A stretch of 64,000 nucleotides of DNA from Pristiophorus japonicus (lineage: Eukaryota). This document shows, in pieces, positions 4,229 to 39,383 of the stretch (the first letter of the stretch is position 1; each line of letters begins with the position of its first letter). The notes under the pieces are model-generated. The model made no database searches. It saw only the letters and a list, made by a program, of their open reading frames with translations, and was not told the DNA's origin. The stretch is from the NCBI RefSeq assembly GCF_044704955.1, contig NC_091989.1:111352001-111416000 (forward strand), read 5' to 3'. The position numbers and the translations under genes are program-made.

Positions 4229-4740
4229 TAACTGTGTCACTCTCCATCTCAATAAAGAATTCTACCATATTATGGGCACTCTTCCCCAAGGGGCCTCGCA
4301 CAAGATTGCTAATTAGTCCTTTCTCATTACACATCACCCAGTCGAGGATGGCCAGCCCTCTAGTTGGTTCCTTGACATATTGGTTTAGAAAACCATCCCT
4401 AATATACTCCAGGAAATTCTCCTCCACCGTATTGCTATCAGTTTGGTTAGCCCAATCTATATGTAGATTAAATTCGCCCATGATAACTGCTGTACCTTTA
4501 TTGCACGCATCCCTAATTTCTTATTTGATGCTGTCCCCAACCTCACTACTACTTTTGGTGGTCTGCATACAACTCCCACTAGCGTTTTCTGCCCTTTGGT
4601 ATTCCGCAGCTCCACCCATACGGATTCCAAGCTAATGTCCTTCCTTACTATTGCATTAATTTCCTCTTTTAGCCAGCAATGCTACCCCACCTTTTCCTTT
4701 CTGTCTATCCTTTCTGAATGTTGAACACCCCTGGATGTTT
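4229..4740 (-). mobile_element. 5' remainder (endonuclease region) of the CR1 LINE at 1-1805
   Basis: ORF 4221-4481 MGEFNLHIDW...PTRGLAILDW is CR1 APE; colinear with the copy at 26570-27100. Confidence 0.88.
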
Positions 4741-17447: not shown

Positions 17448-17485
17448 TGAGTCAGACTGAAACTGAGTGAGTTTGGGGAAATTCC
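17448..17485 (+). promoter_or_regulatory. AICE1 (AP-1 + IRF) element followed by an NF-kB site, distal copy
   Basis: TGAGTCA-gact-GAAA (17448-17462) and GGGAAATTCC (17476-17485). Confidence 0.55.
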
Positions 17486-17873
17486 AAGCAAAGGAAACCC
17501 AGAATTATTGATCTAAATGTTTGACACTCAAAATAATCTTAAAGCAACCAAACTTATTGCTCTATTCCAATCAGTCTGTGTATGTATCCCACAAGATCCT
17601 AAAATAATCTTGTTGAACACTTTGCTTAAATGCCAGAGGAAGTTTGTGCTGTGGCAAGTTTTGGTTGTACCTAATTTTGATTATTAGTTACTTGGTGTTT
17701 TACAGTTCGAAGTGGTAGTCACTATCAGCTAAATAATGGCATGCTATGAAATTACAGATTTATTTTGTTCACGATCTTAGTGGGATATTCTGCACGATCC
17801 CTACATCAGGCAACAGTTTCCCTTTAAATGCAGGGAAAGTACTCCGTGCCAGCTATCATGATATCGAAAGCAT

Positions 17874-17922
17874 TGAGTCAGAATGAAACTGCAAAGAAAT
17901 GTAAGTGAGTTCGGGGAAATTG
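17874..17922 (+). promoter_or_regulatory. AICE1/ISRE-like element plus degenerate kB site, proximal copy, 50-100 bp upstream of the predicted ATG
   Basis: TGAGTCA-gaat-GAAACT (17874-17890) and GGGGAAATTG (17913-17922). Confidence 0.55.
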
Positions 17923-17972
17923 AAGTAGTGACGACTGAAGCAGCATTTTAAATTCGGAGCAATACCAAGAGG

Positions 17973-18042
17973 ATGGAAATCATCGTTTATGAAACAGCTT
18001 GGAAAAGATTTCAGTTTGTCACTGCAGCGAGTTTGGAGACAG
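17973..18042 (+). CDS. RBR-like E3 ligase gene, predicted coding exon 1 (MEIIVYETAWKRFQFVTAASLET-G)
   Basis: ATG in aggATGG context, open 70 nt, donor AG|GTAAAA in phase 1, matching the phase-1 acceptor at 24112. Confidence 0.55.
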
Positions 18043-18224
18043 GTAAAAATCTCATGGTCTAGAACTGAGTTACTAACTAAGATTTGTCTTGTATTTTTTT
18101 GTGACAGCTGGTAAGATATATATTAAATATTCCACAGACTTGCCTGCAACAAGAATGGCAGACAACAGACTGATGGCAGGCAACATCACCCCACAAAATG
18201 GGGTAGGGAAAAAACTGAACGATA

Positions 18225-19702
18225 GATCAGCGGATTGGAAAGCAGCTAATGTAACTCCTCTGTTTAAAAAAGGGGGCAGACAAAAGGCAGGTAACTATAG
18301 GCCGGATAGTTTAACATCTGTAGTGGGGAGAATGCTTGAAACTATCATTAAGGAAGAAATAGCGGGACATCTAGATAGGAATAGTGCAATCAAGCAGACG
18401 CAGCATGGATTCATGAAGGGGAAATTGTGTTTAACTAATTTACTGGAATTCTTTGAGGATATAACGAGCATGGTGGATAGAGGTGTACCGATGGATGTGG
18501 TGTATTTAGATTTCCAAAAGGCATTCGATACGGTGCCACACAAAAGGTTACTGCAGAAGATAAAGGTACACAGAGTCAGAGGAAATGTATTAGCATGGAT
18601 AGAGAATTGGCTGGCTAACAGAAAGCAGAGAGTCAGGATAAATGGGTCCTTTTTGGGTTGGAAATCAGTGGTTAGTGGTGTGCCACAGGGATCGGTGCTA
18701 GGACCACAACTGTTTACAATATACACAGATGACCTGGAAGAGGGGTCGGAGTGTAGTGTAACACAATTTGCAGATGACACAAAGATTAGTGGGAAAGCGG
18801 GTTGTGTAGAGGACTCAGAGAGGCTGCAAAGAGATTTGGATAGGTTAAGCGAATGGGCTAAGGTTTGGCAGATGGAATACAGTGTCGGAAAGTGTGAGGT
18901 CATCCACCTTGGGGGGGAAAAAAACTGTAAAAGGGAATATTATTTGAATGGGGAGAAATTACAACATGCTCGGTGCAGAGGGACCTGGGGGTCCTTGTGC
19001 ATGAATCCAAAAAAGTTAGTTTGCAGGTGCAGCAGGTAATCAGGAAGGCGAATGGAATGTTGGCCTTCATTGCGAGAGGGATGGAGTACAAAAGCAGGGA
19101 GGTCCTGCTGCAACTATAGGGTATTGGTGAGGCCACACCTGGAGTACTGCGTGCAGTTTTGGTCACCTTACTTAAGGAAGGATATACTAGCTTTGGAGGG
19201 GGTACAGAGACGATTCACTAGGCTGATTCCGGAGATGAGGGGGTTACCTTATGATGATAGATTGAGTAGACTGGGTCTTTACTCGTTGGAGTTCAGAAGG
19301 ATGAGGGGTGATCTTATGGAACCATTTAAAATAATGAAAGGAATAGACAGGATAGAGGCAGAGAGATTGTTTCCACTGGTCGGGGAGACTGGAACTAGGA
19401 GGCACAGCCTCAAAATATGGGGGAGCCAATTTAAAACCGAGTTGAGAAGGAATTTTTTCTCCCAGAGGGTTGTGAATCTGTGGAATTCTCTGCCCAAGGA
19501 AGCAGTTGAGGCTAGCTCATTGAATGTATTCAAGTCACAGATAGATAGATTTTTAACCAATAAGGGAATTAAATGTTACGGGGAGCGGGCGGGTAAGTGG
19601 AGCTGAGTCCACGGCCAGATCAGCCATGATCTTGTTGAATGGCGGAGCAGGCTCGAGGGGCTAGATGGCCTACTCCTTTTCCTAATTCTTATGTTCTTAT
19701 GT
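18225..19702 (+). mobile_element. 5'-truncated CR1 LINE, second family with (TTCTTATG)n tail
   Basis: RT ORFs (DWKAANVTPLFKKG, QHGF, FADDTK, RPHLEYC); very similar to 62277-63945. Confidence 0.93.
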
Positions 19703-20739
19703 AGACCTGTAACTCATTTGAAAACAAAGCCCATATCTGCGTATTTTGAAAGGTAGTTATTTACATCAAAATAATCGTTCATTATGTGATAAGTGCACTC
19801 CTTTCCTGGTGTAGCATAGTTAGCTCATTAAACCTTAGTGCCATTTAAGAACATAAGAAATAGGAGCAGGAGTCGGCCATTTGACCCCTCAAGCCTGTTC
19901 AGATAGCATGGATGGATATAAGCCCTGTGCTGCTTAGTTCCCAACCTAAGCTATATTGGGTGGGGTTGTGTTGTGCAGAGGTTGTAGTGAGCCTTAATGG
20001 TAGAGCTTGAGAGGCAAGAGAGAGAGATATAATTGAAAGGAAGAATTCTGTTTTGACTGTCCTTGGTACCTCCTAATAGCAGGTATGAGATAGCATTGGG
20101 GCAATCTGGCAGCAAGCTCTGTGCTCGTCCTTTTGGTTGCAAGTTAGTCAACCAGATGCTTGGAATAAACTTACAGGAATGGGACTTAATCAAAAATATC
20201 TCCCTGGAAAGGAAAAAGTTTAAAATAAGTACATCCAGCTTATGATGGATGATGATAGTGCTGGTTTTATTTCTCCATAACAGATGTGACTCATTTCTAA
20301 CTTCCAGCCTGATCCGGCATAATTTCTTTGAAAATATTTAGAGAGATATCTTTGCTTGGTAACATGATGTGCTGTGCAGAGGTTGTGAAGGAGGCAGAGT
20401 GCAGTAACGTGGTGATCTATTCTACATCACTGTGGCATGATGTACGTTGCCTTGTTCACAAGATGCGCAATCAGACTGATCAACTGTATTCATTATAGAG
20501 GATATACAGCTTCAGATACAGGGAGCCCTGAAGAAGGAGCTTTTAACTCTGGGATTTTACTTTGCACCACAATCTCCATAAATAGCTGCATCAATCTCTG
20601 GGACTGTCTCTCCATCTTCCTCCACACAGTCTCTCTTTCCCTCACTCTCTCTGTATAAAATCTCAGTTGGATTGAGTGGAGAGGTGTTGACCCAATAATT
20701 AGCAACACTGGGAGCCTCACTTCCTGTTCCCTGAAGACT

Positions 20740-21350
20740 CCCGAAAGACCCTAAAGCCCCTCTATGCCAGCATCCAATTGCTTCTTAAATGAATTCCAAG
20801 GCGCTCTCTGGTAGTCCTTTCCAAGTGCTGATCACCTTTTTGTATAAAGAACATTCTGATCGGTTCTAAATTTACTAATTTGAACCTCCTGGCTCTTTAT
20901 CCTATCCTCAATTTAGTTTAAAATTATATGCTAAACATATCTTTTCTATTCCATTAAATATTTTGTCCGCCGGTTAAAAATCAATTCTCAGAAGTCTCCT
21001 CAGGGACTGAAAAGCCCAGGATTCTCCAGACTCTCCTCATTAGCTCAGACCTTCGATGCTAGGTATCAGACCCTTGGCTCTTTTTCTGCACTGAGTCCAG
21101 TCCTTGAATGTCTCTCTTGCATCTCACTAACCAAAACGGTACCGTTTAATCATAACTTTTTGTCTTGTATTCTACTGGGTTTTTTTCTGTGGTTCAACAT
21201 CCTATTTATTGGCTTTGTTGCTTGCTGCTCTGCATTGGTTGGACATGTTGAGCATCAAGTCTGTAAGATTCCTGTGTTTCTTTCAGTTTCACCCATCGCT
21301 ATTTCAAAACCATTCCTGCTGTACATGTCACACCCATTTCCCCTTCTGTG
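20740..21350 (-). mobile_element. Old degraded CR1 3' fragment
   Basis: Degenerate similarity to CR1 C-terminal and 3' sequence (ccaattgcttcttaaatga, tgaaaagccc..ttctccag, caacatcctatt). Confidence 0.45.
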
Positions 21351-21359
21351 TAGCAGTAT

Positions 21360-21608
21360 TAGGCAGTCCCTCGTGTCGAGGATGACCCACTTCCACAGCA
21401 AAAAAATGAATTCTCAGGTGTTTCCATGAGGCACCTGACATTCTAGGTTCCGAACTACATCTTGAAGGGTGGAAGATACCTGTACGTGAATTATTTTAAT
21501 GTGGGTTGGCCACCAACCACCCCACTGGGTTGACAGAGCAAGGTCTTGGTCTATTGGTAACGGTTAACCAAGACGACTGGAGACCAAGCTCCGCTGTATG
21601 GGCCTAGT
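21360..21608 (-). mobile_element. RTE-tailed non-autonomous element, interrupted by a CR1; continues at about 22670-22710
   Basis: Close match to 41221-41480 (aggcagtccctcg..gaggatgac, ccgaactacatcttgaagggtggaagat, taaccaagacgactggagacca). Confidence 0.75.
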
Positions 21609-22640
21609 AAACATAGAAACATAGAAAATAGGTGCAGGAGCAGGCCATTCAGCCCTTCTAGCCTGCACCGCCATTGGCTGAACATGAAACTTCAGTACCC
21701 CCTTCCTGCTTTCTCGCCATACCCCTTGATCCCCCGAGTAGTAAGGACTTCATCTAACTCCCTTTTGAATATATTTAGTGAATTGGCCTCAACTACTTTC
21801 TGTGGTAGAGAATTCCACAGGTTCACCACTCTCTGGGTGAAGAAGTTTCTCCTCATCTCGGTCCTAAATGGCTTACCCCTCATCCTTAGACTGTGACCCC
21901 TGGTTCTGGACTTCCCCAACATTGGGAACATTCTTCCTGCATCTAACCTGTCTAAACCCGTCAGAATTTTAAACGTTTCTATGAGGTCCCCTCTCATTCT
22001 TCTGAATTCCAGTGAATACAAGCCCAGTTGATCCAGTCTTTCTTGATAGGTCAGTCCCGCCATCCCGGGAATCAGTCTGGTGAATCTTCGCTGCACTCCC
22101 TCAATAGCAAGAATGTCCTTCCTCAAGTTAGGAGACCAAAACTGTACACAATACTCCAGGTGTGGCCTCACCAAGGCCCTGTACAACTGTAGCAACACCT
22201 CCCTGCCCCTGTACTCAAATCCCCTCGCTATGAAGGCCAACATGCCATTTGCTTTCTTAACCACCTGCATGCCAACCTTCAATGACTGATGTACCATGAC
22301 ACCCAGGTCTCGTTGCACCTTCCCTTTTCCTAATCTGTCACCATTCAGATAATAGTCTGTGTCTCTGTTTTTAACCACCAAAGTGGATAACCTCACATTT
22401 ATCCACATTATACTTCATCTGCCATGCATTTGCCCACTCACCTAACCTATCCAAGTCACTCTGCAGCCTCATAGCATCCTCCTCGCAGCTCACACTGCCA
22501 CCCAACTTAGTGTCATCCGCAAATTTGGAGATACTACATTTAATCCCCTCGTCTAAATCATTAATGTACAATGTAAACAGCTGGGGCCCCAGCACAGAAC
22601 CTTGCGGTACCCCACTAGTCACTGCCTGCCATTCTGAAAA
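21609..22640 (-). mobile_element. Young 5'-truncated CR1/HER1-like LINE
   Basis: ORFs 21692-22408 and 22371-22622 are nearly identical to the 3' half of the copy at 8714-10908; tail present. Confidence 0.95.
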
Positions 22641-22889
22641 CCCACATATTCCTATTGTCCTTGGTATTCATAGGTCGCAGTGTGGGCCTCGCTGCCGGCC
22701 CGTGCTGCACCTTCCCTGAATACACTCGTGTGCATTAAATTCTTTCTGCCATTGTGCTGCCCACATGCTTGTTTTCCCCAATTCATTTCATTTCTGACTG
22801 CCTCCTCCATTTTCAGTGCTTTCTATGTTGAATCAGCTCCAAATCTAGTCAATTTGCATTGAGTTTCTGAATCAGTGATTGATGCAAAT

Positions 22890-23695
22890 TACAAAGTATT
22901 TACAGCACAGAAACAGGCCATTCGTCCCACCAGGTCCGTGCCGGTGTTTATTCTCCACACAAGCCTCCTCCCACCATTCTTCATCTGACCCCATCAACAT
23001 ATTCTTCCATTCCTGTCTCCTTCATGTGCTTATCTAACTTTCTCTTGAATGCATCTATATTAATTTGCCTCAACTACTCCCTGTGGTAGTGCGGTCCACA
23101 TTATAACCTTTATCTGGGTAAAGAAGTTTCTCCTGAATTCCCGATTGGATTTTATTAGTGACTATCTTATATTTATGACCCCTAATTCTGGTCTCGATTG
23201 CAAGTGGAGACATCTTCTCTACATTATCCCTATCAAACCCTTTCATAATCTTGAAGACCTCCATCAGGTCATCCCTCAATCTTCTCTTTTCTAGAGAAAA
23301 AAGCCCCAGCCTGTTCAATCTTTCCTTATAGGTATAACACCTCAGTTCTGATATTCTAGTAAATCTTTTTTGCAACTTCTCCAGTGTCTTCATATCCTTT
23401 TTATAATATGGAGACCAGAATTTTTCACAGTACCCCAAGTATGGTCTAATCAAGGTTCTATACAAGTTTAACGCAGCTCTGCTTTTCAACACTCTCTCTC
23501 GAAATGAACCACAGTGCTTTGATTGCTATTTTATGGCCTATTAACCAGTGTCGCTACTTTTAGTGATCTGTGTAGCTGTACCCCCAGATCTTTGTTTATC
23601 TACTCCATTTAGACACTTATTTTCTAAGGAGTATGTGATCTCCTTTTTCTTCCTACGAAAATATATTACCTTGCATTTATCTATGTTAAAGTTCA
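22890..23695 (-). mobile_element. Older CR1 3' fragment
   Basis: ORF 23070-23492 (LYRTLIRPYLGYC..FWSP, LFSLEKRRLRDDL). Confidence 0.85.
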
Positions 23696-24111
23696 TGAAT
23701 TCAAAATGGTAGTGGTCCCAATACCAAGCCTGTATTTTCCCTCCCCACCACTGGCAACTGAAAAATACAAGCTGCAATTTAGTAGGGATGTGCTGACTGG
23801 AGACTGCACTGGGCTTCCATAATGAGAGGTGGGGAAGATCCAATCTTGGCTCTCTATGGTACCATCGAGTGGCCCCAAGTAAAGACAGCCAACATATCCA
23901 AATAGTGACATTGTTTAGGAAGGGTTTGCAATGAGACTGGTTAAGTCAGAGGACCTGTGGATGTCTGAGTACATCAGAATGAAATTAATTTTACTATTTT
24001 CAGTTTAGCAGCTTCCAGCTGATCTTGCTTGGAAGTACAGTGCTCAGATTTTCAAGCGTTTGAATTCATTGTGAATTATTTGTTTCAAGCTATGCCTGTT
24101 CTCTCTTGTAG

Positions 24112-24188
24112 GAGGGCATGAAGCATCCTGTGGTCATATGGTGATGTCCAAGGGTCTGAAGGAATGGTGTAAGGCACTTCTAGATGAG
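24112..24188 (+). CDS. RBR-like E3 ligase gene, coding exon 2 (GHEASCGHMVMSKGLKEWCKALLDE; RING1-like part)
   Basis: Acceptor ttctctcttgtag, donor GAG|GTGAGT, phase 1 in and 0 out; SCGH....W.C..LL pattern. Confidence 0.85.
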
Positions 24189-24362
24189 GTGAGTTCACAG
24201 CTGGTCAGAATTATCTTCAAGTGCTGGGCACATGAACTTTCAGCTTCAGGGCTGGTCTGTTATAGTGGAGGGAGATGGATGATAGGGCAAAACAGTTGTT
24301 TTCTCTTCTATTTCAGCAGTGGGAATTTCTTCACGTCCCCATCCAGTCATCTTTATGGCTTG

Positions 24363-27300
24363 GAAACATAGAAAATAGGTGCAGGAGTAGGCCATTCGGC
24401 CCTTCGAGCCTGCACCACCATTCAATAAGATCATGGCTGATCATTCCCGCAGTTCCCCTTTCCTGCTTTCTCTCCATACCCCTTGATCTCTTTAGCTGTA
24501 AGGGCCATATCTAACTCCCTCTTGAATATATCCAATGAACTGGCATCAACAACTCTCTGCGGCAGGGAATTCCACAGGTTAACAACTCTGAGTGAAGAAG
24601 TTTCTCCTTATCTCAATCCTAAATGGTCTACCCCATATCCTAAGACTATATCCCCTGGTTCTGGATTTCCCCCAACATCGGGAACATTCTTCCCGCATCC
24701 AACCTGTCCAGTCCTGTCAGAATCTTATACATTTCTATGAGATCCCCTCTCATCATTCTAAACTCCAGTGAATAAAGGCCCAGTTGAACCAGTCTCTCTC
24801 TTCATATGTCAGTCCAGCCATCCCTGGAATCAGTCTGGTGAACCTTTGCTGCACTCCCTCAATAGCAAGAACATCCTTCCTCAGATTAGGAGACCAAAAC
24901 TGAACACAATATTCCAGGTGAGGCCTTGTACAACTGCAGCAAGGCCTCCCTGCTCCTTTCTCAAATCCGCTAACTATGAAGGCCAACATACCATTTGCCT
25001 TTTTCACCGCCTGCTGTACCTGCATGCCAACTTTCAACGACTGATGAACCATGGCACCTAGGTTTCGTTACACTTCCTCTTTTCCTAATCTGCCGCCATT
25101 CAGATAATATTCTGCCTTCATGTTTTTGCACCCTAAATGGATAACCTCACATTTATCCACATGATACTGCATCTGCCATGCATTTGCCCACTCACCTAAC
25201 CTGTCCAAGTCACCCTGCAGCCTCTTAGTGTCCTCCTCACAGCTCACACCGCCACCCAGTTTAGTGTCATCTGCAAACTTGGAGATATTACACTCAATTC
25301 CTTCATCTAAATCATTAATCTATATTGTAAAGAGCTGGGGTCCCAGCACTGAGCCCTGCGGCACTCCACTAGTCACTGCCTGTCATTCTGAAAATGACCC
25401 GTTTATCCTGACTCTCTGCTTCCTGTCTGCCAACCAGTTCTCTATCCACGTCAGTATATTACCCCCAATACCATGTGCTTTGATTTTGCACATCAATCTC
25501 TTGTGCGGGACCTTGTCAAAAGCCATTTGAAAGTCCAAATACACCACATTCACTAGTTCTCCCTTGTCCACTCTGCTTGTTACATCCTCAAAGAAATTCT
25601 GGAAGATTCGTCAAGCATGATTTCCCTTTCATAAATCCATGCTGACTTGGACCGATATTGTCACTTCTTTCCAAATGCGCTGCTATTTCATCCTTAATTA
25701 TTGATTCCAACATTTTTCCCACTACTGATGTCAGGCTAACCGGTCTATAATTACCCGTTTTCTCTCTCCCTCCTTTTTTTAAAAGTGGTGTTACATTAGC
25801 TACCCTCCAGTCCATAGGAACTGATCCAGAGTCGATAGACTGTTGCAAAATGATCGCCAATGCATCCACTATTTCTAGGGCCACTTCCTTAAGTACTCTG
25901 GATGTACACTATCAGGCCCCGGGGATTTATCGGCCTTCAATCCCATCAATTTCCCTAACACAATTTCCCACCTAATAAGGATTTTCTTCAGTTCCTCCTT
26001 CTCCCTAGACCCACTGTCCCCTAGTACATTCGGAAGGTTATTTGTGTCTTCCTTAGTGAAGACAGAGCCGAAGTATTTGTTCAATTGGTCTGCCATTTCT
26101 TTGTTCCCCATTATAAATTCACCTGAATCCGACTGCAAGGGACCTACGTTTGTCTTCACTAATCTCTTTCTCTTCACGTATTTATAGAAGCTTTTACAGT
26201 CAGTTTTTATGTTCCCTGCAAGATTCTTCTCGTACTCTATTTTCTCCCTCTTAATTAAAACCTTAGTCCTTCTCTGAATTCTAAATTTCTTGCAGTCCTC
26301 AGGTTTGTTGCTTTTCCTAGTCAATTTATATGCCTCTTCCTTGGTTTTAACACTCTCCATAATTTCCTTTGTTAGCCACGATTGAGCCATCTTCCCCGTT
26401 TTATTTTTACTCCAGAAAGGGATGTACAATTGCTGAAGTTCATCCATGTGATCTTTAAATGTTTGCCATTGCTTATCCACCGTCAACCCTTTAATTATCC
26501 TTTGTTAGTCTATTCTAGCCAGTTCACACCTCATACCGTCGAAGTTACCTTTCCTTAAGTTCAGGACCCTAGTTTCCGAATTAACTGTGTCACACTCCAT
26601 CTTAATAAAGAATTCTACCATATTATGGTCACTCTTCCCAAGGGGCCTCGCACAACAAGATTGCTAATTAGTCCCTTCTCATTACACATCACCCTGTCTA
26701 GGATGGCCAGCTCTCTAGTTGGTTCCTCGACATATTAGTCTAGAAAACCATCCCTAATACACTCCAGGAAATCCTCCTCCACCGCATTGCTACCAGTTTG
26801 GTTAGCCCAGTCAATATGTAGATTAAAAGCGCCCATGATAACTACTGTACTTTATTGCACACATCCCTTATTTCTTGTTTGATGCTGTCTCCAACTTCAC
26901 TACTACTGTTTGGTGGTCTGTACACAACTCCCACGAGCGTTTTCTGCCCTTTGGTATTCCGCAGCTCCACCCATACATATTCCACATCATCCAGGCTAAT
27001 GTCCCTCCTTACTATTGCATTAATTTCCTCTTTAACCAGCAATGCCACCCGCCTCCTTTTCCTCTCTGTCTATCCTTCCTAAATGTTTAATACCCCTGGA
27101 TGTTGAGTTCCCAGCCTTGGTCATCCTGGAGCCATGTCTCCGTGATGCCAATTATATCATATCCATTAACTGCTGTCTGCGCCGTTAATTTGTCCACCTT
27201 ATTCCGAAGACTCCTCGCATTGAGGCACAGAGTCTTCAGGCTTGTCTTTTTAACACATTTTGCCATTTTAGAATTTTGCTGTAATGTGGCTCTTTTTGTT

Positions 27301-28531
27301 TTTTGCCTTGGGTTTCTCTGCCCTCCACTTTTACTATTCTCCTTTCTATCCTTTTTCTTCTGCCTCCATTTTATTTTCCTCTGTCTCCCTGCATAGGTTC
27401 CCATTCCCCTGCCATGTTAGTTTAACTCCTCCCCAACAGCACTAGCAAACACTCCCCCGAGGACCTTGGTTCTGGCCCTGACCAGGTGCAGACTGTCCAG
27501 TTTGTACTGGTCCCTCCTCCCCCAGAACCGGTTCCAATGTCCCAGGAATTTGAATTGCTCCCTCTTGCACCACTCCTCAAGCCACGTATTCATCTGAGCT
27601 ATCCTGCGATTCCTACTCTATCATGTGGCACTGGTAGCAATCCTGAGATTACTATTTTTGAGGTCCTACTTTTTAATTTGGCTCCTAGCTCCCTAAATTT
27701 GTCTCGTAGGACCTCATCCCGTTTTTTACCTATATTGTTGGTACCTATATGCACCACGACAACTGGCTGTTCACCCTCCCTTTTCGGAATGTCCTGCACT
27801 TGCTCCGAGACATCCTTGACCCTTGCAGCCGCAGAAACACCTATCTATTCCCCTTACAGTCGAATCCCCTATCGCTATAGCTCTCCCACTCTTTCCTGCC
27901 CTCCTGTGCAGCAGAGCCACCCACGGTGCCATGAACTTGGCTGCTGCTGCCTTCCCCTGGTGAGTCATCCCCCTTCACAGTACCCAAAGCGGTGTATCTG
28001 TTTTGCAGAGGGATGACACTACCTACCTTCCACTGCTCTTCCTATTGGTCACCCATCTCTTATCTGGCTGTGTACCTTTAACCTGCGGTAAGACCAACTC
28101 GCTAAACGTGCTATTCACATCATTCTCAGCATCTTGGATGCTCCAGAGTGAATCCATCCACAGCTCCAGTGCCGCAAGTGGTCCGTCAGGAGCTGGAGGC
28201 GGATACACTTCCCGCACACGTAGTCGTCAGGGACATCGGAAGCGTCCCTGACTTCCCACATAGTACAGGAGGAGCATAACACATGTCCGAGCTGTCCTGC
28301 CATGTCTTAACCCTTAGATTAACTTAATTTGGCGGCAACAATGCTAAAAGGTTACTTACTGATGAAGAAAAGAAAAAAGAAAAACTACTTACCAATCACT
28401 TACCCCATTGGCTGTGACGTCACCTTTCGATTTCTTTCTACTTTTTTGCCTCCCTGCTGCAGCTGCACCGGCTGGCCTTTATAGGCCTCTGGCTGCTCGA
28501 TCTCCCGTCTCTCCGACGCACCTCGAACTCC
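24363..28531 (-). mobile_element. Near full-length CR1/HER1-like LINE (5' UTR, ORF1 zinc finger plus esterase, ORF2 APE-RT), degenerate, in intron 2 of the RBR gene
   Basis: ORF1 start MAGQLGHVLCSSCTMWE..CGKC (28303), VVVHIGTN esterase block, LNARS endonuclease, RT fragments, tail at 24363. Confidence 0.93.
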
Positions 28532-28611
28532 CCTATAAAGGCCAGGAGTCAGGGAGTTCGAGGTGCGTTGGTGAGGCGGGAGATCGAGCAGCCAGAAGCC
28601 TGTAAAGGCCA
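28472..28611. repeat. About 60-bp inverted repeat at the LINE 5' end
   Basis: The reverse complement of 28472-28531 matches 28550-28611 with about 6 mismatches; the spacer contains ctataaaggccag. Confidence 0.9.
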
Positions 28612-29456
28612 CCAGTCGGGAATAAATTACCAAGTATGGGAGAGATCAGAGGCACGGATTAGAGGGGGAATGGGTCAAGTATCTAGTTTCATTCAGTCCA
28701 ATATTTTCAAAGTTGCGTCCTGGTGATGCACTTCAGCTGCAGGATAACTGCAATGAATGCAACATTGTTATAAAACTATCGCACAGTGTGGTGCCAAGAT
28801 ATTAAGTGTACGCACATTCACAAAACAAGGTGAGCGGGTACTTTCAATATACAACCTGTGGGACTGCAAGGCATTTGCTAGACTTCTGAAGCTTTGCTGG
28901 GCTCCTCATTGTCGGTGTATTTTTGCATTCGTCCCCAGTATTACACCATAGAAAGGCCAGTCACTGCAACAAGATTGGTAACTTCCAAAGACATGAAGGA
29001 TGTGATTTAAATGCAAGTTCATTCATCGTCGTTTCAAATATGCATCCACATTGCCCAGCGATGATTAGCAATCATATATTGGCAGCAAAATTATGACTGC
29101 AGTAGGAAATATGCCATGAGATGTTCTTGCCTTTTTTATATATGTAAGGGCTCTGAATACCTCTTAAATTACACCTCCTGATGTACATTCTATATATAAA
29201 TTGTCAAACACACGTCATTAGATTCCAACCTGTAACTCGCACCCAAGGATTCCATTGTTCTGTATATTAAAAAAATAGAGACTCTCGATTAGTTGAGTGT
29301 GCATGTTACCCCCTGGCATATTCATTATTGATATCTCTCTCTAAGTGGTGCACAGTAGATATTTACAAGAATTTGAGTTCCATTTTTGACTGGGTAGTGG
29401 ACGAGCTCAGAACGATTGGTTGCAGCAGCTTTATTACAACAGTTGATTCTCTGTAG

Positions 29457-29606
29457 GGTCGCCTCACGTTTAACTGCCCCAAGTGTGCAAAGGAGTGGCC
29501 CTGGCAGGAGGTGCGGCAACTTTCCCAGTTGACGCAGGAGGAATGCGGACCCTATGAAGAGCAGCTTGGCAGGATAATGACACAAAAGGCTGAGTCATAC
29601 CGAAAG
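29457..29606 (+). CDS. RBR-like E3 ligase gene, coding exon 3 (GRLTFNCPKCAKEWPWQEVR...AESYRK)
   Basis: Acceptor ttctctgtag, donor AAG|GTAACT, 150 nt, phase 0-0, CPKC..EW motif. Confidence 0.88.
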
Positions 29607-29883
29607 GTAACTGTCATGTGTTTTAGGATTTTTTATCTTTTTTTTCAAATAAATGATTCAACGTTGAGCAATGATTGTGTTTTGACACCAAATGTATTCG
29701 GAGGTTTAAATTTTTTAAAGCTGCTGACGTTGTAGCTGTTTGTTAAAGCTTGACGAGCCAGTTTGTGACCTACAGTATACATCACATTGGGACAATGAGG
29801 TCAGTTGTCTTGTCCCAGGCCCATTCAGCCAGGCTGAATTCTATTCATGTTTTCTTTTGATCCATACCCAGAGGAGAGGGAGC

Positions 29884-32800
29884 TGATCATAGTTACTGGG
29901 AAATAAGTGTGACCGTAGTCCTTTATTACAGATCTGAGTGCTCTGTGAGGCCTCCTTATATACAGGTGCTCTCAAGGGATTGTGGGATCTCTAGGGAATA
30001 AGCCCTCTGGTGGTTAGACATGGTAATGACAGGTTTACATACATAACACTTCCCCCACCCCCCCCCCCTGCCAAACCCCGGCCCCCAAAGTCAATAGTGT
30101 AACCATTTACAATGAGTCGATACTTTCCCTGGTTGATCGTCTCGGTGCAAATGCTAGTGTGGGTGAGTCATTTGTTGGGCCTTCACTGGGCTGCTGCACA
30201 GCTGGTCTTGCTGGACTGCTGGGGGTAGTGAGCCTTGCTGGGCTGCTGCGGGTGATGGGTTCTGCTTCGTGGTCAACCGCTGGGTCGGTTGTCACTTGTG
30301 CGTGTGTTGGAGGGTCGAAAAAGGTAGTCTGTTGTGGGTTGTTCTGGATAGTCTGTAAACCTGAGTTTGGTTTGGTCCAAGTGTTTTCTACAGGTGAGTC
30401 CATTTACGAGTTGATTACAAACACCCTACTCCCCTCTTTGGCCAAAACAGTGCCAGCAATCCACTTGGGACCTTCTCCATAGTTCAACACAAATACAGGA
30501 TCATTTACTTCAATTTCGCATGACAGATTTGCGCGATCATGATATGTATTTTGTTGAAGCCGCATGCTCTCTACCTGTTCATGTAGATCAGGGTGGACTA
30601 ACAAGAGCCTTGTCTTAAGTGCCCTTTTCATGAGCAGTTCAGTGGGAGGGACCCCAGTGAGTGAGTGGGGTCTTGTGCAGTAACTAAACTCGGGATAAGC
30701 GAGTCTGCAGTGAGCCATCAGTTACCCTGTTCAAGCTCTGCTTGATTGTTTGAACTGCTCGTTCTGCCTGACTATTGGACGCTGACTTAAATAGAGCAGA
30801 CGTGACATGTTTGACCCCATTGTGGGTCATGAATTCCTTGAATTCAGCACTGGTAAAACAGGGTCCATTGTCACTTACAAGGACAATCAGGCAGGCCGTG
30901 TGTGGCAAACATGGGCCCGAAGGCTTTCAATGGTGGCAGTGGACATTCTTGCCGACATTATCTCACATTCAATCCATTTGGAGTACGCATCCTACAACCA
31001 GTAAAATATTTTTCCCAAGAATGGGCCTGCATAGTCGACATAAACCCTAGACCACGGTTTGGAGGGCCAAGGCCATCAACTTAGTGGCACCTCCCTGGGT
31101 GCATTGTTTAACTGGGAGCATGTTTTACATTTGTGCACAAAGGACTCTAAATCTGCACTGATACCGGGCCACCACATGTGGGATCTGGCTATCGCTTTCG
31201 TCATTACAATGCCTGGGTGGGTACTGTGGAGATCACTAATGAAAGTGTACCTGCCCTTTTTTGGCACAACTACCCGATTACCCGATAGGAGGCAGTCTGC
31301 CTGTATGGACATTTCACCTTTGCGCCGCTGTTATAGCTTTATTTCTTCCTGCATCTCGAACGGGACACTAGACCAACTCCCGTGGAGCACACTTTTTTTT
31401 TTTAGCTCGTCCAAGTTCTAATCTGTCGGGCGGTAACAGGTGATTGCTCTCTCTCGAATGCTTCCATTACCGTAACTAAATCTGCAGGCTTAGGCGGTGT
31501 CATGTGGTGGGCAATGGTAGCCTACTGAGAGCATCAGCACAGTTTTCTGTGGCGGATGGTATAGTTGTATGCGGACAACATGAGCGCCCATCTCTGGATG
31601 CGGGCTGATGCATTCGTATTTATCCCTTATTTTCAGAAGAGAGAGATTTAAGCGACTTATGGTCTGTTTCCAATTCAAATTTGAGCCCGAACAGATATTG
31701 ATGCATTTTCTTTACCCCTTAAACACACGAACGCTTCTTTTTCGATCATACTGTAGGCTCTCTCGGCCTTGGACAGACTTCTGGATGCATAAGTACCAGT
31801 TTCAATTTCCGAAATTCATTAGCTTGTTGCAATACACACCTGACCCCGTACAACGATGCATCACATGCTAGTACCAAATGTTTACATGGATCGTACAACA
31901 CAAGCAATTTGTTTGAACATAACAGCTTTCTAGCTTTCTCAAAGGCATTTTCTTGGCTTTTACCCCATACCCATTCATCTCCTTTATGCAGTAAAGAGTG
32001 CAGGGGTTTTAACAACATGCCAAGACCCGGTAAGAAGTTACCAAAATAGTTCAGGAGTCTTAGAAACGACCGCAGCTCTATTACGTTCTGTAGTCTTGGT
32101 GCATTTTTGATTGCTTCCGTCTTCGAATCGGTAGGCCTGATGCCGTCCGCCACGATTCTTCTCCACTTCAGGCGCCAGGAAAACGCACTTCGAGCATTTT
32201 AGCCTGAGCCTCACACGATTAAGTCGACTAAGAACCTCCTCCAGGTTCTGCAGGTGCTCGACGGTGTCCTGACCTGTACCCAAGATGTCATCCTGGAAGA
32301 CCACGGTGCGTGGGACCGACTTCAACAAGCTTTCCATGTTCCTCTGGAATATTGCCGTGGCCAATTGAATCCCAAACGGGCATCTGTTGTAAACGAAAAG
32401 ACCTTTGTGCGTGTTGATGCAGGTGAGGCCTTTCGAAGATTCCTCCAGCTCCTGCGTCATGTAGGCCGAGGTCAAGTCCAGCTTTGTGAGCGTTTTCCCT
32501 GCCGCCAGCATTACAAATAGGCCCGTCTGCCTTTGGTAGCAGGTATTGATCCTGCAGTGAGAAACGATTGATAGTTACTTTGTAATCACCGCAGGTTCTG
32601 GCGGTGCCATCTCCCTTGAGGACTGGAACAATCGGACTGACCCACTCATTGAATGCGAAATTATGCCCTCTCATTGTAGCCTGTCCAGCTCGATCTCCAT
32701 CCTCATCATGTAAGGTACCGCTCTCGCCTTGTGATGGGTCACACCCCCGAAATCAAATGGATCTGCACTTTTGCTCCTTGGAACTTCCCGATGCGTGGAT

Positions 32801-35800
32801 TGAACAGCGAGGGGAACTTGCTTAGGACCTGGGCACATGAGGTGATGGCGACGGACGAAAGCGCTTTGACGTCGTCCCAGTCCCAGCGTATCTTTCCCAA
32901 CCAACTCCTGCTGAACAGCGTGGGGCCATTGCCCAGTACCACCCAGAGTGGTAAATCGTGCCCTGCTCCATCGTAGGAGACCTTTACGGTAGCACTGCCA
33001 ATCAGATCCTTTGTGTAGGTTCTAAGTTTAATGCGAATGGGGGTCAGGACTGTCCTTGAAGCCTTGTTGCACCACAACTTATCAAAAGTTTTTTTACTCG
33101 TTATAGACTGACTTGCGCCCGTGTCCAGTTCCATGGACATCGGGAGTCCATTTAATTCAACCTTCAGCATTATCGGGGGACACTTTGTGGTAGATGTGTG
33201 CACCCCATATACCTCTGCCTCCTTGGTCTGAGGCTCTGGTTCATCATGATCCACCGTGGATCTGTCCTCCTCTGCAACATGGTGGTTTGCAGGGTTTGCA
33301 GCTCGCCTCCACATACGTTAGAGGTGTCCCATTGTTCCACAGCCCTTGCAAACGTATCCTTTGAAGCACCATGAATGGAATCAGTGATCACACCTGCAGC
33401 GCCAACAAGGTGTTAATGGCCTTGTATTCACCACGCTTAATGGCGGACTCTGAGTCATCTGCGGCCGTGCAGCTACAGGCGTGTAAGTCCTGCCATGTAC
33501 ATTTTGATTTGAAAACAACGTTACTTTGTTCACAGTACTTGCAACAGCACTAGTGTGCTGGGAAATTTGTTTGGTATTGTCACTGGTGGAGATAAATGCC
33601 TGGGCTATCGCTATGGCTTTACTCCAGGTTGGGGTCGCTACAGTCAAAAGTTTGCGAAGTATTACTTCATGGCCAATGCCAAGTACAAAGAAGTCCCTGA
33701 GCATGTGCTCCAAGTGTCCTTCAAATTCGCAATCTCCTTTAGCTCGGCGACATAGCTCGCCACTTCCTGACCTTCAGACCTCTTGTATGTGTAGAACCGA
33801 TACCTTGCCATCCGAACACTTTCCTTCAGGTTTAGATGCTCCCGGATCAGTGTGCACAACTCATCGTATGACTTGTCTATGGGTTTTGCTGGAGCGAGCA
33901 GGTTTTTCATGAGGCAATACGTTGGTGCCCCGCAAACGGTGAGGAGGATCGCCCTTCATTTGGCAGCGTTCCCTTCTCCTTCCAGCTAATTGGCCACAAA
34001 GTATTGGTCAAGTAGCTCCACAAAGGTTTCCCAATCATCTCCCTCTGAAAATTTCTCCAGGATGCCCACAGTTCTCTCCAATGCCCTACAGGGTCCTGAA
34101 CTTAAAGAAAGGTAACTTCGATGGTATGAGGCGTGAATTGGCTAGGATAGACTGGCAAATGATACTTACAGGGTTGACAGTGGATAGGCAATGGCAGACA
34201 TTTATAGATTACATGGATGAACTTCAACAATTATACATCCCTGTCTGGAGTAAAAATAAAGAGGGAAGGTAGCTCTACCATGGCTAACAATGGAAATTAG
34301 GAATAGTGTTAAATCCAAAGAAGAGGCATATAAATGTACCAGAAAAAGCAGCAAACCTGAGGACTGGGAGAAATTTAGAATTCAGCAGAGGAGGACAAAG
34401 AATCTAATTAGGAGGGGGAAAATAAAGTATGAGAGGAAGTTTGCAGGGATCATAAGAACTGACTGCAAAAAGCTTATATAGATATATGAAGAGAAAAAGA
34501 TTACTGAAGACCAACATATAGGTCCTTTGCAGTCAGAATCAGGTGAATTTATAATGGGGAACAAAGAAATTGCAGATCCAATCGAACAAATACTTTGGAT
34601 AGGAAGACACAAATAACCTTCCAGAAATACTAGGGGTTCGAGGGTCTAGTGAAAAGGAGGAACTGAAGGAAATCCTTATTGGTCAGAAAATTGTGTTAGG
34701 GAAATTGATGGGATTGAAGGGCGATAAATCTCCAGGGCCTGATAGGCTGCATCCCAGAATACTTAATGAAGTGGCCCTAGAAATAGTGGATGCATTGGTG
34801 ATCATTTTCCAACATTCTATTGACTCTCGATCAGTTCCTATGGACTGGAGGATAGCTAATGTAACACCACTTTTTAAAAAAGGTGGGAGAGAGAAAACAG
34901 GGAATTATAGACCAATTAGCCTAACATCGGTGGTGGGGAAAATGTTGGAATCAATTATTAAAGGTGAAATAGCAGCGCATTTGGAAAGCACTAACAGGAT
35001 TGGTCCAAATCAGCATGGATTTATAAAAGGGAAATCATGCTTGACAAATCTTCTAGAATTTTTTGAGGATGTAATTAGTAGAGTGGACAAGGGAGAACCA
35101 GTGGATGTGGTATATTTGGATTTTCAAAAGGCTTTTGGCAAGGTCCCACACAAGAGATTGGTGTGTAAATTTAAAGCACATGGTATTGGGGGTAATGTAT
35201 TGACATGGATAGAGAACAGGTTGGCAGACAGGAAGCAGAGAGAATGAATGGGTCCTTTTCAGAATGGCAGGCAGTGACCAGTAGGGTGCCGCAGGGTTCA
35301 GTGCTGGGACCCAAGCTATTTACAATATACATCAATGATATAGATGAAGGAATTGAATGTAATATCTCCAAGTTTGCAGATGACACTAAGCTGGGTGGCG
35401 GTGTGAGCTGTGAGGAAGATGCTAAGAGGCTGCAGGGTGACTTGGAAGGTTAGGTGAGTGGGCAAATGCATGGCAGATGCAGTGTAATGTGGATAAATGT
35501 GAGGCTATCCACTTTGGTGGCAAAATCAAGAAGACAGAATATTATCTGAATGGTGACAGATTAGGAAAAAGGAAGGTGCTGCAACAAGACCTGGGTATCA
35601 TGGTATATCAGTCATTGAAGTTTGGCATGCAGGTACAGCAGGAGGTGAAGAAGGCAAATGGCATGTTGGCCTTAATAGCTAGGGGATTTGAGTATAGGAG
35701 CAGGGAGGTCTTAATGCAGTTGTACAGAGCCTTGAGGAGGCCACACCTGGAATATTGTGTTCAATTTTGGTCTCCTAATCTGAGGATGGACATTCTTGCT

Positions 35801-36520
35801 ATTGAGGGAGTACAGTGAAGGTTCACCAGATTGATTCCTGGGATGGCAGGACTGACATATGAGGAGAGACTGGATCAACTTGACTTGTATCCACTGGAGT
35901 TTAGAGGAATGCGAGGGGATCTCATAGAAACATATAAAATTTTGACCGGATTGGACAGATTAAAGGCAGGAAGAATGTTCCCGTTGCTGGGGAGTTCCAG
36001 AACCAGGGGTCACAGTCTAAGAATAAGGGGTAAGCCATTTAGGACCGAAATGAGGAGAAACTTCTTCATTCAGAGTGGTTAACCTGTAGAATTCTCTACC
36101 GCAGAAAGTTGTTGAGGCCAGTTCGTTAAATATATTCAAAAGGGAGTTAGATATAGCCCTTGCGGCCAAAGGGATCAAGGGGTATGGAGAGAAAGCAGGA
36201 AAGGGGTACTGAGGTTGAATGATCAGCCATGATCATATTGAATGGCGGTGCAGGCTTGAAGGGCTGAATGGCCTGCTCCTGCACCTATTTTCTATGTTTG
36301 TTGCATTGGGATTCATCATCTGTATCTCGTTGCCAGTTGTTATCTCTTCGATAAAGTAAGTGTGACTGTAGTTCTTTATTACAGATCTCAGAGTACCTCT
36401 CCAGCCTGTGAGGCCTCCTAATATACAGGTGCTCCCAAGGGATTGTGGGATCCCTTGAGACTCCAGGGGATAAGCCATCTGGTGGTTAGACATGGTAATT
36501 ACAGGTTTATATACATAACA
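29884..36520 (-). mobile_element. Degenerate Ty3/Gypsy LTR retrotransposon, interrupted by a CR1 at 34081-36298
   Basis: Domain order gag, PR (MELDTGAS), RT (LDLTSAY, FQDD), RNase H (LACDAS), INT (LHSTHPG..C..C, SDNGP). LTRs at about 29884-30048 and 36338-36520. PBS TGGCAACGAG at 36326-36335 and polypurine tract at 30049-30068. Confidence 0.92.
34081..36298 (+). mobile_element. 5'-truncated CR1/HER1-like LINE inserted at the Gypsy gag start
   Basis: RT ORF fragments 34693-36082; tail cctattttctatg at about 36285-36296. Confidence 0.93.
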
Positions 36521-38299
36521 GAAAAGATGTTAGATGGACGATCCCTACTCACTGGCCAGCCGTATAGACTGAGAAAAGGACAAAGTGACGTGGGCAGTGA
36601 GTAAAACCAACTAGCTCTGAGGTGGGAGCCTGGCCTAGTGAGGTGGAATATACCTAACGCCAGCCCACAGCCAGTTAGAATCAGCAAGGCTAATCAGAAA
36701 AAGTCAAGTAAGCCCACTAATGTGGATTGTATGGGCCATTTCCTGTTCTTGTGGAGGGTTCTGCAGTTAGTTAAATCAAGGCAATATTCGAGTACATATG
36801 TTCTATATCTTCACTTACTGTCGGTAAAGCAGTTTAATGATTTGTATCTGGTCTTCTCTACAGTGTTGCTCAGTTTGAGCTCAAACATTGGAGAAGGGCA
36901 CACGGGTATGTGTGTGAAATGCACAATATCCAGTTCAGATCAGAAGGGGTCCTATATTTACCCACTCCGGTTTACGCTATCGTATAATTAAATATTGGGC
37001 AGTAGGGGCATACTCCTTAATGCAAGTTATTCAGACCACTTCTAGAAATGACCAGCACCACTGTACCCTAGAGAATATCTGAGGCAAACGTGTAACAGTG
37101 ACTATTAAAGATAAAGCCCCAGCAGTTATCATACTGGTTCAAATGTATTCCTTTTTGGTTAATTCCTCTCCACTTTACTAATTTCCCACTTGGCATCAGC
37201 ACTGTAACTTAAATGGGAGCGAAGGAAAAGTACTGCTCGACTTTTGCCAATGTAAAAACAAGATATACAAGAAGGTACAGTATCTTCTATTTCGACATCC
37301 AACATCACGTCGGTCTTGGCGATACCCTAATTTTTTTTCACAACCTCAATACATCACAAAAGGTAAAATCATTAATATTAATGTAAAGATGAAGAGGCAA
37401 GAAGGTTCAGGAGAGAAGAGAAGTGAAGAAAGTGGCCAGGAACAGGAAAGACCAAGTGGGAGACTGAGTGAGGTTGAGATGGAGGGAGATGCAGACTCAG
37501 TAAGCTGGTCGGTTAATGTTTTGGTGGGGCGGGGGAAGAGACGGGGATCTGAGTCTAGGCTAAAGGGTAAGAGAGAAAATCTAAAATGGGATAATTCCCA
37601 TGCAAAATTGCACCATTCTGCCTCACAGCTACTCTGACATTGTGCTTCAATAATAACTGGAAATTATGCAGGGGCCCATCAGATGGCCTCTGCATATAAT
37701 AATAACATTGCAAACAAAATGGGGACAAACTGAATAGAAACATTTTAAAACATTGAATAAGTAGCTTGTAGCCCTTTGCAGCTGTAAATAGAACACAAAA
37801 GGAACTGGCGGTTAATAGAAAATAAACGGCTCATTGTGGCTAGCGAACCCAGCCATTCGTCGTAGTGCTGGTGAATTTTGCAACTGACTATTGTGTGAGC
37901 TATTTCTGGAAACCTTCAGTCCCTTGCCTTCAGCCCTTCATATAAACATGTGCTCACAAAATCTGACAAGATTTCAAATTCCCTGGATTTAAAAAAAAAA
38001 ATTGATGTTAGATGGATAGATCCATCACTGTTGACTTTGAGTGCTAACTAACCAAACATTTGAACGTCAAACTTGTGTGGTAGCAATTACTAAGATGAAA
38101 AGATGTTCAGAGGTAGAAAGAGAATCTCCAAGCGATTCAGAAGTTATGTTGACTATAAAACAATGACGAGAACAGATTTGAATTGTGATCAGTTTTGGTC
38201 ATGAGATTTGAGAAAGAGAATAGGAGATACTGACCAGAGGTCAAAGGAGGACATTAAGCAACATACTCAGTCTTAAGCAGGTATGCTTGAAGTGTTAAA

Positions 38300-38540
38300 G
38301 AATGGCAAACTGTTCTAATTGGAATAGAAATCTGGAATTCTCCCTCCCAAAAGGCTGTGGATGCTGGCACAATTAGAGCTTTCAGGACTGAGATTGATTG
38401 ATTTTTGTTAGGTATGTGTATCAAGGGATATGGAGCTGAGATGGGTAAATTGAGTTGAGCTACAGAGCAGCCATGATCTAATTGAATGATGGAGCAGGCT
38501 CGAGGGGCTGAATGGCCCACTCCTATTCCTATGTCCCTAT
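38300..38540 (+). mobile_element. Old CR1 3' end fragment
   Basis: tctggaattctccctcccaaaaggctgtggatgct...ggagcaggctcgaggggctgaatggcccactcct. Confidence 0.75.
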
Positions 38541-38783
38541 CAATAATTAGCACAATGGCAGAGAAATCTGCAATCCAAGATGCAAAAATCAGGAACAGGA
38601 TCAGTGGGCTAATGTTGGAGTAGCTCTGTGTGATGAAACAGGAGATACCAAGCCAAAATGTAAATGATACAGTTCTACATTTTTCAGTTCTAATTTCATT
38701 CCTCGCTCCCCAACCCCCCATTCAAATCCCTAACATAAATAGATACATTTGTCACTAATTCCTTTTCTCATTTTGTCTTTCAG

Positions 38784-39383
38784 TGTCCAGACTGCAGTCT
38801 CTATGTACAGAGAATGGATATGGAGAAGCTATGTGTTCAGTGTCCGCCTTGCTCCAAGAGATCAAAGAAAGTCTTTCAGTTCTGCTGGGACTGTCTGAGG
38901 GAGTGGAAGAATGCTGATATGCAGAATGACAGCTGCGGTAATGAATCCTGCAGTGTGACAGCACTGCTTCTGGGCTGCAGTACAATCGAAGACATGGCTA
39001 GTGCAGTGTATGGATGCCCTAAAGTACGGGCCTGCCCCAACTGTGAGGCATTAGCAGAGCATTGCATGAGAGGTTGTCCAAGTGTATTGTGTCCCAATTG
39101 CAGGCACCTATTTTGTTACCGGTGCCTTGAGTTAAATGGATGTCATAGAGAAAGACAAGCTGGTTTAATATGTTGCCCTATAGCTGAAAGGCAAAAGCTG
39201 ACTGGCAAAAAGGTCTATAGTAAAAACGCACACCTGCAGGATTTGGATGCATTTATAAGACTGCATTTATTAGCAGAAAGAGATGCCATTCGCCAAGAGC
39301 GGCAAAGAAACATCCAGCCAGGAAGCTTGCATCTACAGCAGCTGAGGAATGAACAGCCCAATAGCTCGTGTGTCATTTCCTAA
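38784..39383 (+). CDS. RBR-like E3 ligase gene, last coding exon: IBR, RING2/Rcat and C-terminal CaaX (CVIS)
   Basis: Acceptor ttttgtctttcag, phase 0. CPDC..CPPC..FCWDC..C..C (IBR) and RACPNC...GC....CPNC...FCYRC (RING2). Ends NSSCVIS*. Confidence 0.9.
   Translation, partial: CPDCSLYVQRMDMEKLCVQCPPCSKRSKKVFQFCWDCLREWKNADMQNDSCGNESCSVTALLLGCSTIEDMASAVYGCPKVRACPNCEALAEHCMRGCPSVLCPNCRHLFCYRCLELNGCHRERQAGLICCPIAERQKLTGKKVYSKNAHLQDLDAFIRLHLLAERDAIRQERQRNIQPGSLHLQQLRNEQPNSSCVIS

Follow-up and report, generated by a model that had tools for sequence, protein, structure and literature searches.

A sawshark gene for a minimal RBR ubiquitin ligase with a candidate farnesyl anchor

A 64,000-nt stretch of the genome of the sawshark Pristiophorus japonicus (contig NC_091989.1, positions 111,352,001 to 111,416,000 of the forward strand; hereafter the window) contains an intact, spliced and expressed four-exon gene. 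Its product belongs to the RING-between-RING (RBR) class of E3 ubiquitin ligases and ends in the tetrapeptide C-V-I-S, a CaaX box. The best reading of this gene, which we hold with moderate confidence, is that it encodes a minimal RBR ligase anchored by a farnesyl group. By homology the protein is an RBR-type ligase; its ligase activity is presumed from the sequence, and prenylation of the CVIS tail is likely.

In this model, the RING1-like domain presumably docks a ubiquitin-charged conjugating enzyme (E2~ubiquitin), and the ubiquitin would be transferred first to Cys197 of RING2 and from there to the substrate, as in other RBR ligases. RING2 is followed by a predicted helix of ~30 residues, a disordered linker and a farnesyltransferase-type CaaX box. 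The most likely role of this tail would be to carry a lipid that keeps the protein on the cytoplasmic faces of endomembranes, making it a lipid-anchored counterpart of the minimal RBR ligases RNF144A/B, which have transmembrane (TM) anchors. The gene is one member of an extensive family of small animal RBR proteins, most of them without a name, in which CaaX tails have come and gone repeatedly.

The RBR ligases form a small, intensively studied class, whose known membrane-bound representatives rely on TM helices. If the proposal is correct, a natural CaaX-anchored RBR would be a new way to place a thioester-forming E3 on membranes, and such anchoring would be reversible and under the control of the prenylation pathway, and evolution could easily switch it off.

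Gene structure and transcripts

The exon borders were read directly in the sequence (coordinates in Table 1). Exon 1 opens with ATG and closes cag/gt, exon 2 is flanked by ag/...gag/gt and exon 3 by ag/...aag/gt, and exon 4 follows an ag/ acceptor and terminates in TGT GTC ATT TCC TAA (C-V-I-S-stop, 39369-39383). With phases compatible across all four, the exons add up to 897 nt (70 + 77 + 150 + 600), or 298 codons plus a stop. For database comparison the exons were used as separate queries and not joined. Exon 4 alone, as a protein query, retrieved 14 proteins at E<=0.001 among 21 candidates; an alignment-based word search gave 21 proteins, none of them new. The best match to exon 4 was P0001, a 298-residue UniRef entry from P. 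japonicus itself (100% identity), whose database name is 'E3 ubiquitin-protein ligase DDB_G0292642-like'. In tblastn, P0001 maps precisely onto the four exon blocks, and the orthologues from Heptranchias, Chiloscyllium and Stegostoma (P0002, P0004, P0007) split at identical exon borders. The original prediction, made from the sequence without database searches, had described four phase-compatible exons and a product of about 298 residues; on the evidence of AG/GT borders, phases and identity to P0001, its model is the same as the public gene model.

Contigs of coded sequencing runs were mapped on 38200-41200; such contigs give no level, strand or ends. Run X7, from the same species, contains 0.83 of the stretch's words, and no run recorded as RNA contains the stretch. 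Contig 29 of X7 (529 nt, 0 differences) has 230 nt placed at 38782-39011 and the other 299 nt unplaced in the mapped stretch. Contig 30 (792 nt, 4 differences) covers 39013-39804 and includes RING2, the tail, CVIS, the stop and 3' untranslated region (UTR) without a joint, and X7 depth is zero in the intron at 38604-38704. A contig of run X1, from a related species (1258 nt, 111 differences), is placed at 38782-39524 from its own position 320, with the same acceptor cut, and a 620-nt contig of run X5, from another organism, is cut at this acceptor too. As the contigs begin at the last-exon acceptor, leave the intron uncovered and cover CVIS-stop, the transcript is spliced as modelled and retains CVIS. 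Transcripts that remove CVIS or stop before it had been named as a possible weakness of the model; the same-species contig instead runs through CVIS-stop into the 3'UTR, which may extend to the first plus-strand AATAAA (40841-40846), with further contigs at 39907-41177.

If the ambiguous 'AG' at the junction (two letters) is counted in, 301 nt of contig 29 stay unplaced. Exons 1-3 have 297 nt, 4 nt fewer, and judging from this length the unplaced part would correspond to them. A missing upstream exon that completes RING1 was considered and excluded, because the same-species contig is by length only ~4 nt longer than the coding exons and the MEII... start is common to the shark and chimaera models. 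A pseudogene is excluded as well by the intact frame, the expression of the gene and the conservation of the ligands.

The RBR core and its one-zinc RING1

As anticipated for the IBR and Rcat modules, Pfam profiles exceed their gathering scores on P0001, with IBR_1 at 32.7 bits (cut-off 27) over residues 179-215 and IBR at 27.3 bits (cut-off 24.3) over residues 84-142. On exon 4 alone both families fall below these scores (24.9 vs 27 and 20.5 vs 24.3), and a phmmer search of exon 4 against the PDB gave a chance-level match only (0.14). A profile built from 11 relatives matched six distinct PDB sequences at E<=0.01, namely two of CUL9 (5.3e-5), three of ARIH2 (1.3e-3) and the RING2 of Ariadne-1 (7.6e-3). 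In this search Cys197 is aligned on the cysteine of the RING2 motif 'EGC' of CUL9 and 'GGC' of ARIH2, which we take to be the catalytic cysteine of these enzymes. Cys197 is invariant in the alignment of 11 relatives and present in at least 90% of an alignment of 143 family members, where nearly all zinc ligands of the IBR and RING2 are conserved like it. A histidine five residues before it (His192, 39060-39062) is found in at least 90% of the same 143 members, whereas the aligned ARIH2/CUL9 motif offers no equivalent; this histidine may serve as a catalytic or zinc residue specific to the family.

The N-terminal domain is reduced. It retains a single zinc site, C30-x-H32...C56-x2-C59; the first CxxC pair is absent and a beta-hairpin (residues 2-17) occupies its place. 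Alignments of relatives show this one-zinc RING1 to be common to the whole family, which poses the question of how little RING1 suffices for an RBR to engage an E2. Pfam searches found no RING family on P0001 at E<=0.01 and none on the exon 1-3 peptides at E<=1. An AlphaFold2 model based on the relatives' alignment has a mean predicted local distance difference test (pLDDT) of 86.6 and a predicted template modelling score (pTM) of 0.74. With this model, Foldseek retrieved 25 PDB chains at E<=0.001; among the matches listed, all are RBR ligases (ARIH2, HOIP, HHARI, parkin and others), the best being ARIH2 (1.5e-6). Residues 1-93 of the model superpose on HOIL-1L 279-364, RNF216 513-596 and parkin 236-326, presumably the RING1 regions of these proteins, with Z of 5.4-5.8 and a root-mean-square deviation of 2.9-3.2 Å over 78-81 residues, and residues 94-153 can be aligned with modules of the IBR/RING2 type in HOIP, HHARI and parkin. 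The RING1-like domain is thus predicted to have lost one of two zinc sites while keeping the RING1 fold. Of the RING1-like/IBR/RING2 architecture in the original prediction, the IBR and RING2 stand by Pfam, profile and model, and the term RING1-like is apt for a variant with one zinc site and no Pfam RING match.

Among solved structures, the Ariadne-type RBR ligases (ARIH1/HHARI, ARIH2, CUL9) give the best sequence matches, over RING2 including the active-site cysteine, at a weak 20-25 bits. The sawshark protein differs from them: it lacks an Ariadne domain and an N-terminus of acidic or UBA-like type, its RING1 is degenerate, and the catalytic cysteine has no histidine at +2. Kinship to RNF144 is indicated only by automatic names, and the profile search of the PDB (E<=0.01) brought up no solved chain of RNF144.

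The CaaX terminus and its recurrence

The extension of about 60 residues after RING2, ending in CVIS-stop, was found as originally described, and contig 30 covers it. In the model it consists of a helix (residues 246-276) followed by a low-confidence tail, with pLDDT below 50 at 283-291 and ~56 over the last block; a flexible C-terminus is therefore predicted, as for a prenylation substrate. The end has a cysteine at -4, aliphatic residues at a1 and a2, a transferase-selecting X and a true C-terminus. Serine at X specifies farnesylation, leucine geranylgeranylation and phenylalanine either. The expectation that the protein has no TM segment was borne out: the highest 19-residue Kyte-Doolittle mean is 1.21, in the IBR-RING2 linker, and the scan found no TM-like window anywhere in the protein. 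A TM anchor is excluded by this hydropathy, the tail being a charged helix plus a disordered stretch.

Conservation of the box in orthologues, which the original prediction had raised, is partial. The orthologue clade comprises sharks, a chimaera and the coelacanth (9 rows, FastTree support 92), and the box is present in five of the nine informative species: CVIS in Pristiophorus, CVTF in Heptranchias, CVIF in Chiloscyllium punctatum and C. plagiosum, and CIVS in Latimeria. It therefore extends from sharks to coelacanth and is absent in the other four species, considered below. A fragment from S. torazame is uninformative and stands outside the nine.

The box also recurs in the wider family. 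A profile search of 1.84 billion representatives returned 874 matches at E<=0.001 (511 at 1e-10, 104 at 1e-30). Among the best-listed 150 of these 874, cysteine stands at -4 in 13, versus 1-4 at each of the positions -1 to -3 and -5 to -8, and a canonical C-a-a-X is found in ten, nine ending in L and one in F. Named carriers include the stingray Hypanus (CTIL), the caecilian Microcaecilia (CTIL, with CTIS in a second copy) and one teleost model; in these carriers a long linker of low complexity lies between the RBR core and the box. On a FastTree tree of 143 of 182 proteins (those outside 200-400 residues and ids above P0166 were left out, and starred branches are less trustworthy), the 16 CaaX rows need 12 changes, ten of them forced by starred branches, compared with a mean of 15.4 after shuffling and one in 500 shuffles as low. 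The box is thus scattered over the tree, with many gains or losses, and is clustered only through near-copies. The recurrence of CaaX at exactly -4 on a disordered, otherwise drifting tail argues for a function.

On the basis of these patterns we put forward, tentatively and with less than even confidence, that this old animal family of minimal one-zinc-RING1 ligases alternates between soluble and lipid-anchored forms through repeated gain and loss of CaaX, and that the prenylated shark-coelacanth form predates the split of cartilaginous and bony vertebrates. If this is true, it would be a class of prenyl-anchored RBR ligases that is missing from mammals, a functional analogue of the TM-anchored RNF144 that possibly acts in membrane-associated cell-autonomous defence. 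The many gains or losses would also supply matched pairs of paralogues, one anchored and one soluble, for comparison.

The family is known mainly by automatic names. The 30 clusters looked up are called RNF144A-like, RNF19B-like, RNF217-like or DDB_G0292642-like, and NCBI names the orthologues automatically as 'RNF144A-like' or 'RNF144A-A'. These clusters span sharks, rays, chimaera, coelacanth, lungfish, paddlefish, teleosts, a caecilian, turtles, a bivalve and a sponge; no mammal or bird is among the 30, a sample too small to show absence. In the Atlas the protein lies among chordate IBR clusters, and one lead from there, 'si:ch211-212k18', was discarded as irrelevant since its literature concerns a neighbouring CD68-like gene. 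Several relatives (P0029, P0067, P0122 and P0074) have additional domains. Loach and bivalve members carry an N-terminal ubiquitin-like domain, as in parkin; a teleost model bears at its C-terminus a ubiquitin domain that ends in LRGG, together with a CRIL-containing tail; and in a sponge member the RBR is fused to a protein kinase domain. A sister group of shark RBR proteins (P0008, P0010-P0013), which includes a second Pristiophorus gene outside the window, has an acidic insert (ELSDDDDT...) inside the RING2 end and no CaaX, with tails ending ...QGFI or QGFIWR.

ZAP-L, the GBPs and OAS1 p46 are prenylated cell-autonomous defence proteins, and, as in the sawshark protein, no polybasic second signal is known near the CaaX of ZAP-L. 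FBXL2 is a geranylgeranylated F-box component of a ubiquitin ligase that is targeted to the membrane by CaaX; it is the substrate receptor of an SCF RING ligase, unlike an RBR with its own catalytic cysteine. The catalytic or effector domains of ZAP-L (PARP13.1), GBP1 and OAS1 p46 are unrelated to the sawshark RBR. In agreement with the original prediction, PMC8568172 describes ZAP-L as ending in an S-farnesylated CVIS, which moves ZAP-S to endomembranes when appended to it; the likeness to the sawshark protein consists of the identical tetrapeptide and extends to targeting logic only. The TM anchor assigned beforehand to RNF144A/B is likewise found in PMC7458406, where these proteins have an RBR core followed by a C-terminal TM domain. 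At ~300 residues, with an RBR core and then a C-terminal membrane anchor, they resemble the sawshark protein (PMC7458406). The anchor of the latter would, in contrast, be a prenyl group on CVIS and not a TM helix, and its RING1 has one zinc site where theirs is a full C3HC4. Among the papers listed, judged by title or beginning of abstract, none concerned a natively prenylated RBR. The name DDB_G0292642 occurred in no paper, and no paper about the family was found under its automatic names. Public databases already contain a model of this gene, but the literature searched seems to hold no description of the family, of its one-zinc RING1 or of its recurrent CaaX.

Alternative readings and genomic surroundings

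Several observations weigh against a farnesyl-anchored, active ligase. The canonical two-zinc C3HC4 RING1 of RBR ligases is not found in the sawshark protein; with the first CxxC pair gone and no Pfam RING match, E2 binding is uncertain. VIA Z scores of 5-6 count as 'middling' (Z below 8 per the tool), and the histidine seen at +2 of the catalytic cysteine in the aligned ARIH2/CUL9 motif is absent. No CaaX occurs in Heterodontus (3 isoforms), Scyliorhinus canicula (2 isoforms), Stegostoma or Callorhinchus (6 sequences, one of them an NP_ record that we take to be mRNA-based by RefSeq convention), and the tail is accordingly dispensable in some lineages; the short end of Heterodontus looks like a truncation of the same tail, since the protein still aligns into exon 4, to 39275. 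In 12 members with CaaX, neither a polybasic stretch nor a second cysteine lies near the box, and their hold on the membrane may therefore be weak, transient or reversible. Finally, P0122, the teleost model among the ten canonical CaaX representatives, is without RING2 and may be a mis-joined model.

An extended version of the proposal, in which the farnesylated RBR is induced by infection or interferon through AP-1/IRF and NF-kB sites in a duplicated module and acts on pathogen-associated membranes, is in our view unlikely. Two copies of the composite TGAGTCA-N4-GAAA (17448-17462 and 17874-17888) lie in the 530 nt before the ATG, and the degenerate form TGASTCA-N4-GAAA is found three times in the window versus 0.10 expected, the third inside exon 3. 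The two upstream composites represent one event, being copies of one duplicated block of ~90 nt that consists of AAGTACTCC, GCATTGAGTCAGAnTGAAACTG and then AGTGAGTTyGGGGAAATT. The NF-kB consensus is not enriched (2 in the window vs 8.8 expected), and only the distal copy, GGGAAATTCC, is perfect; the proximal module may fall in the 5'UTR. The interferon-stimulated response element GAAANNGAAAS is absent from 17000-17972. The motifs that the original prediction had reported just upstream are hence present, as composites and GGGAAATTCC, and lose force through their single origin, the unenriched kB site and the lack of GAAANNGAAAS. Precedent favours an immune role in that prenylated innate-defence proteins such as ZAP-L exist. 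A trout infection table lists as up-regulated ligases that carry the automatic name 'RNF144A-like' and may or may not be kin to the sawshark family. Induction by infection is a guess from short promoter motifs, and action at pathogen-associated membranes is purely conjectural. If the immune link were true, an E3 would join ZAP-L, the GBPs and OAS1 p46 among prenylated defence proteins, and the strategy would date to early vertebrates.

It is rather improbable that the protein is a soluble cytosolic RBR ligase with an unused CVIS, the CaaX-like end being a tolerated accident of a fast-evolving tail. The four orthologue species without the box and the missing second membrane signal fit such an accident, as does the poor conservation of the tail, for which a tail-only search matched the sawshark protein itself alone. 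Contig 30 differs from the reference at 39249, 39255 and 39291, within 43 nt of the tail helix, and by codon count all three changes are nonsynonymous (A->T, I->L, R->C); as two of the three are common to related-species contigs, the reference may carry derived alleles here. An accident accounts poorly for a cysteine that keeps the precise position -4, followed by aliphatic a1 and a2, in two shark superorders and the coelacanth despite a diverged linker, for the 3-13x excess of cysteine at -4 over neighbouring positions in the 150 representatives, and for nine further family members ending C-a-a-L. Least probable, and very unlikely, is a catalytically weak or inactive RBR-like adaptor whose half-RING1 recruits no E2 and which serves as a membrane-tethered scaffold or ubiquitin binder: the family-wide loss of the first RING1 zinc site and the absence of a Pfam RING match would suit it, but the (near-)invariance of Cys197 and of the RING2 and IBR ligands across 143 sequences is hard to explain without catalysis, and the predicted N-terminal fold superposes on the RING1 of HOIL-1L, RNF216 and parkin.

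Table 1. Positions of the gene, its upstream module and repeats in the window
Feature	Position	Strand	Remarks
Coding exon 1	17973..18042	+	residues 1-23 plus one base; N-terminal beta-hairpin of RING1-like domain
Coding exon 2	24112..24188	+	residues 24-49; C30-G-H32 of single RING1 zinc site
Coding exon 3	29457..29606	+	residues 50-99; C56-x2-C59, helix toward IBR
Last coding exon	38784..39383	+	residues 100-298 plus stop; IBR, RING2, tail helix, CaaX
IBR domain	38784..38951	+	residues 100-155; Pfam and model alignment
RING2/Rcat	39033..39176	+	residues 183-230; Pfam and PDB profile
Cys197 codon	39075..39077	+	candidate catalytic cysteine
C-terminal extension, predicted long helix	39222..39314	+	residues 246-276; AlphaFold model
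CaaX box C295-V-I-S298	39369..39380	+	stop at 39381-39383
3'UTR	39384..39804	+	under same-species RNA-derived contig (contig 30)
Distal promoter-module copy	17444..17483	+	TGAGTCA-N4-GAAA, then NF-kB consensus GGGAAATTCC at 17476-17485
Proximal promoter-module copy	17870..17921	+	12-nt insertion, imperfect kB-like GGGGAAATTG; 52-103 nt upstream of ATG
LINE copies	990-4600, 8724-10809, 18089-19606, 21692-22408, 25875-26486, 34693-35818, 62291-63839	both	
30-nt minisatellite	57522-57821		9.9 copies, 90% matches
C-rich array	60385-60723		17/60-nt units

The surroundings of the gene are rich in repeats. About 250 nt upstream of the last exon lies a very high-copy repeat (38327-38540) whose summed contig depth reaches ~1e5 in each of the four runs, other species included, with many internal joints; it is probably an element resembling a short interspersed nuclear element (SINE) and common to sharks. 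Intron 3 contains, on the minus strand at 31746-33314, pol fragments of a long terminal repeat (LTR) retroelement broken over several open reading frames (ORFs); their aspartyl protease does not reach the Pfam cut-off, and their RNase H-like domain scores 44.1 bits. Copies of long interspersed nuclear elements (LINEs) with endonuclease and reverse-transcriptase ORFs fill the flanks and introns on both strands; two samples gave Pfam RVT_1 at 56.7 bits and Exo_endo_phos at 47.2 bits, and the copy at 18089-19606 lies directly 3' of exon 1.

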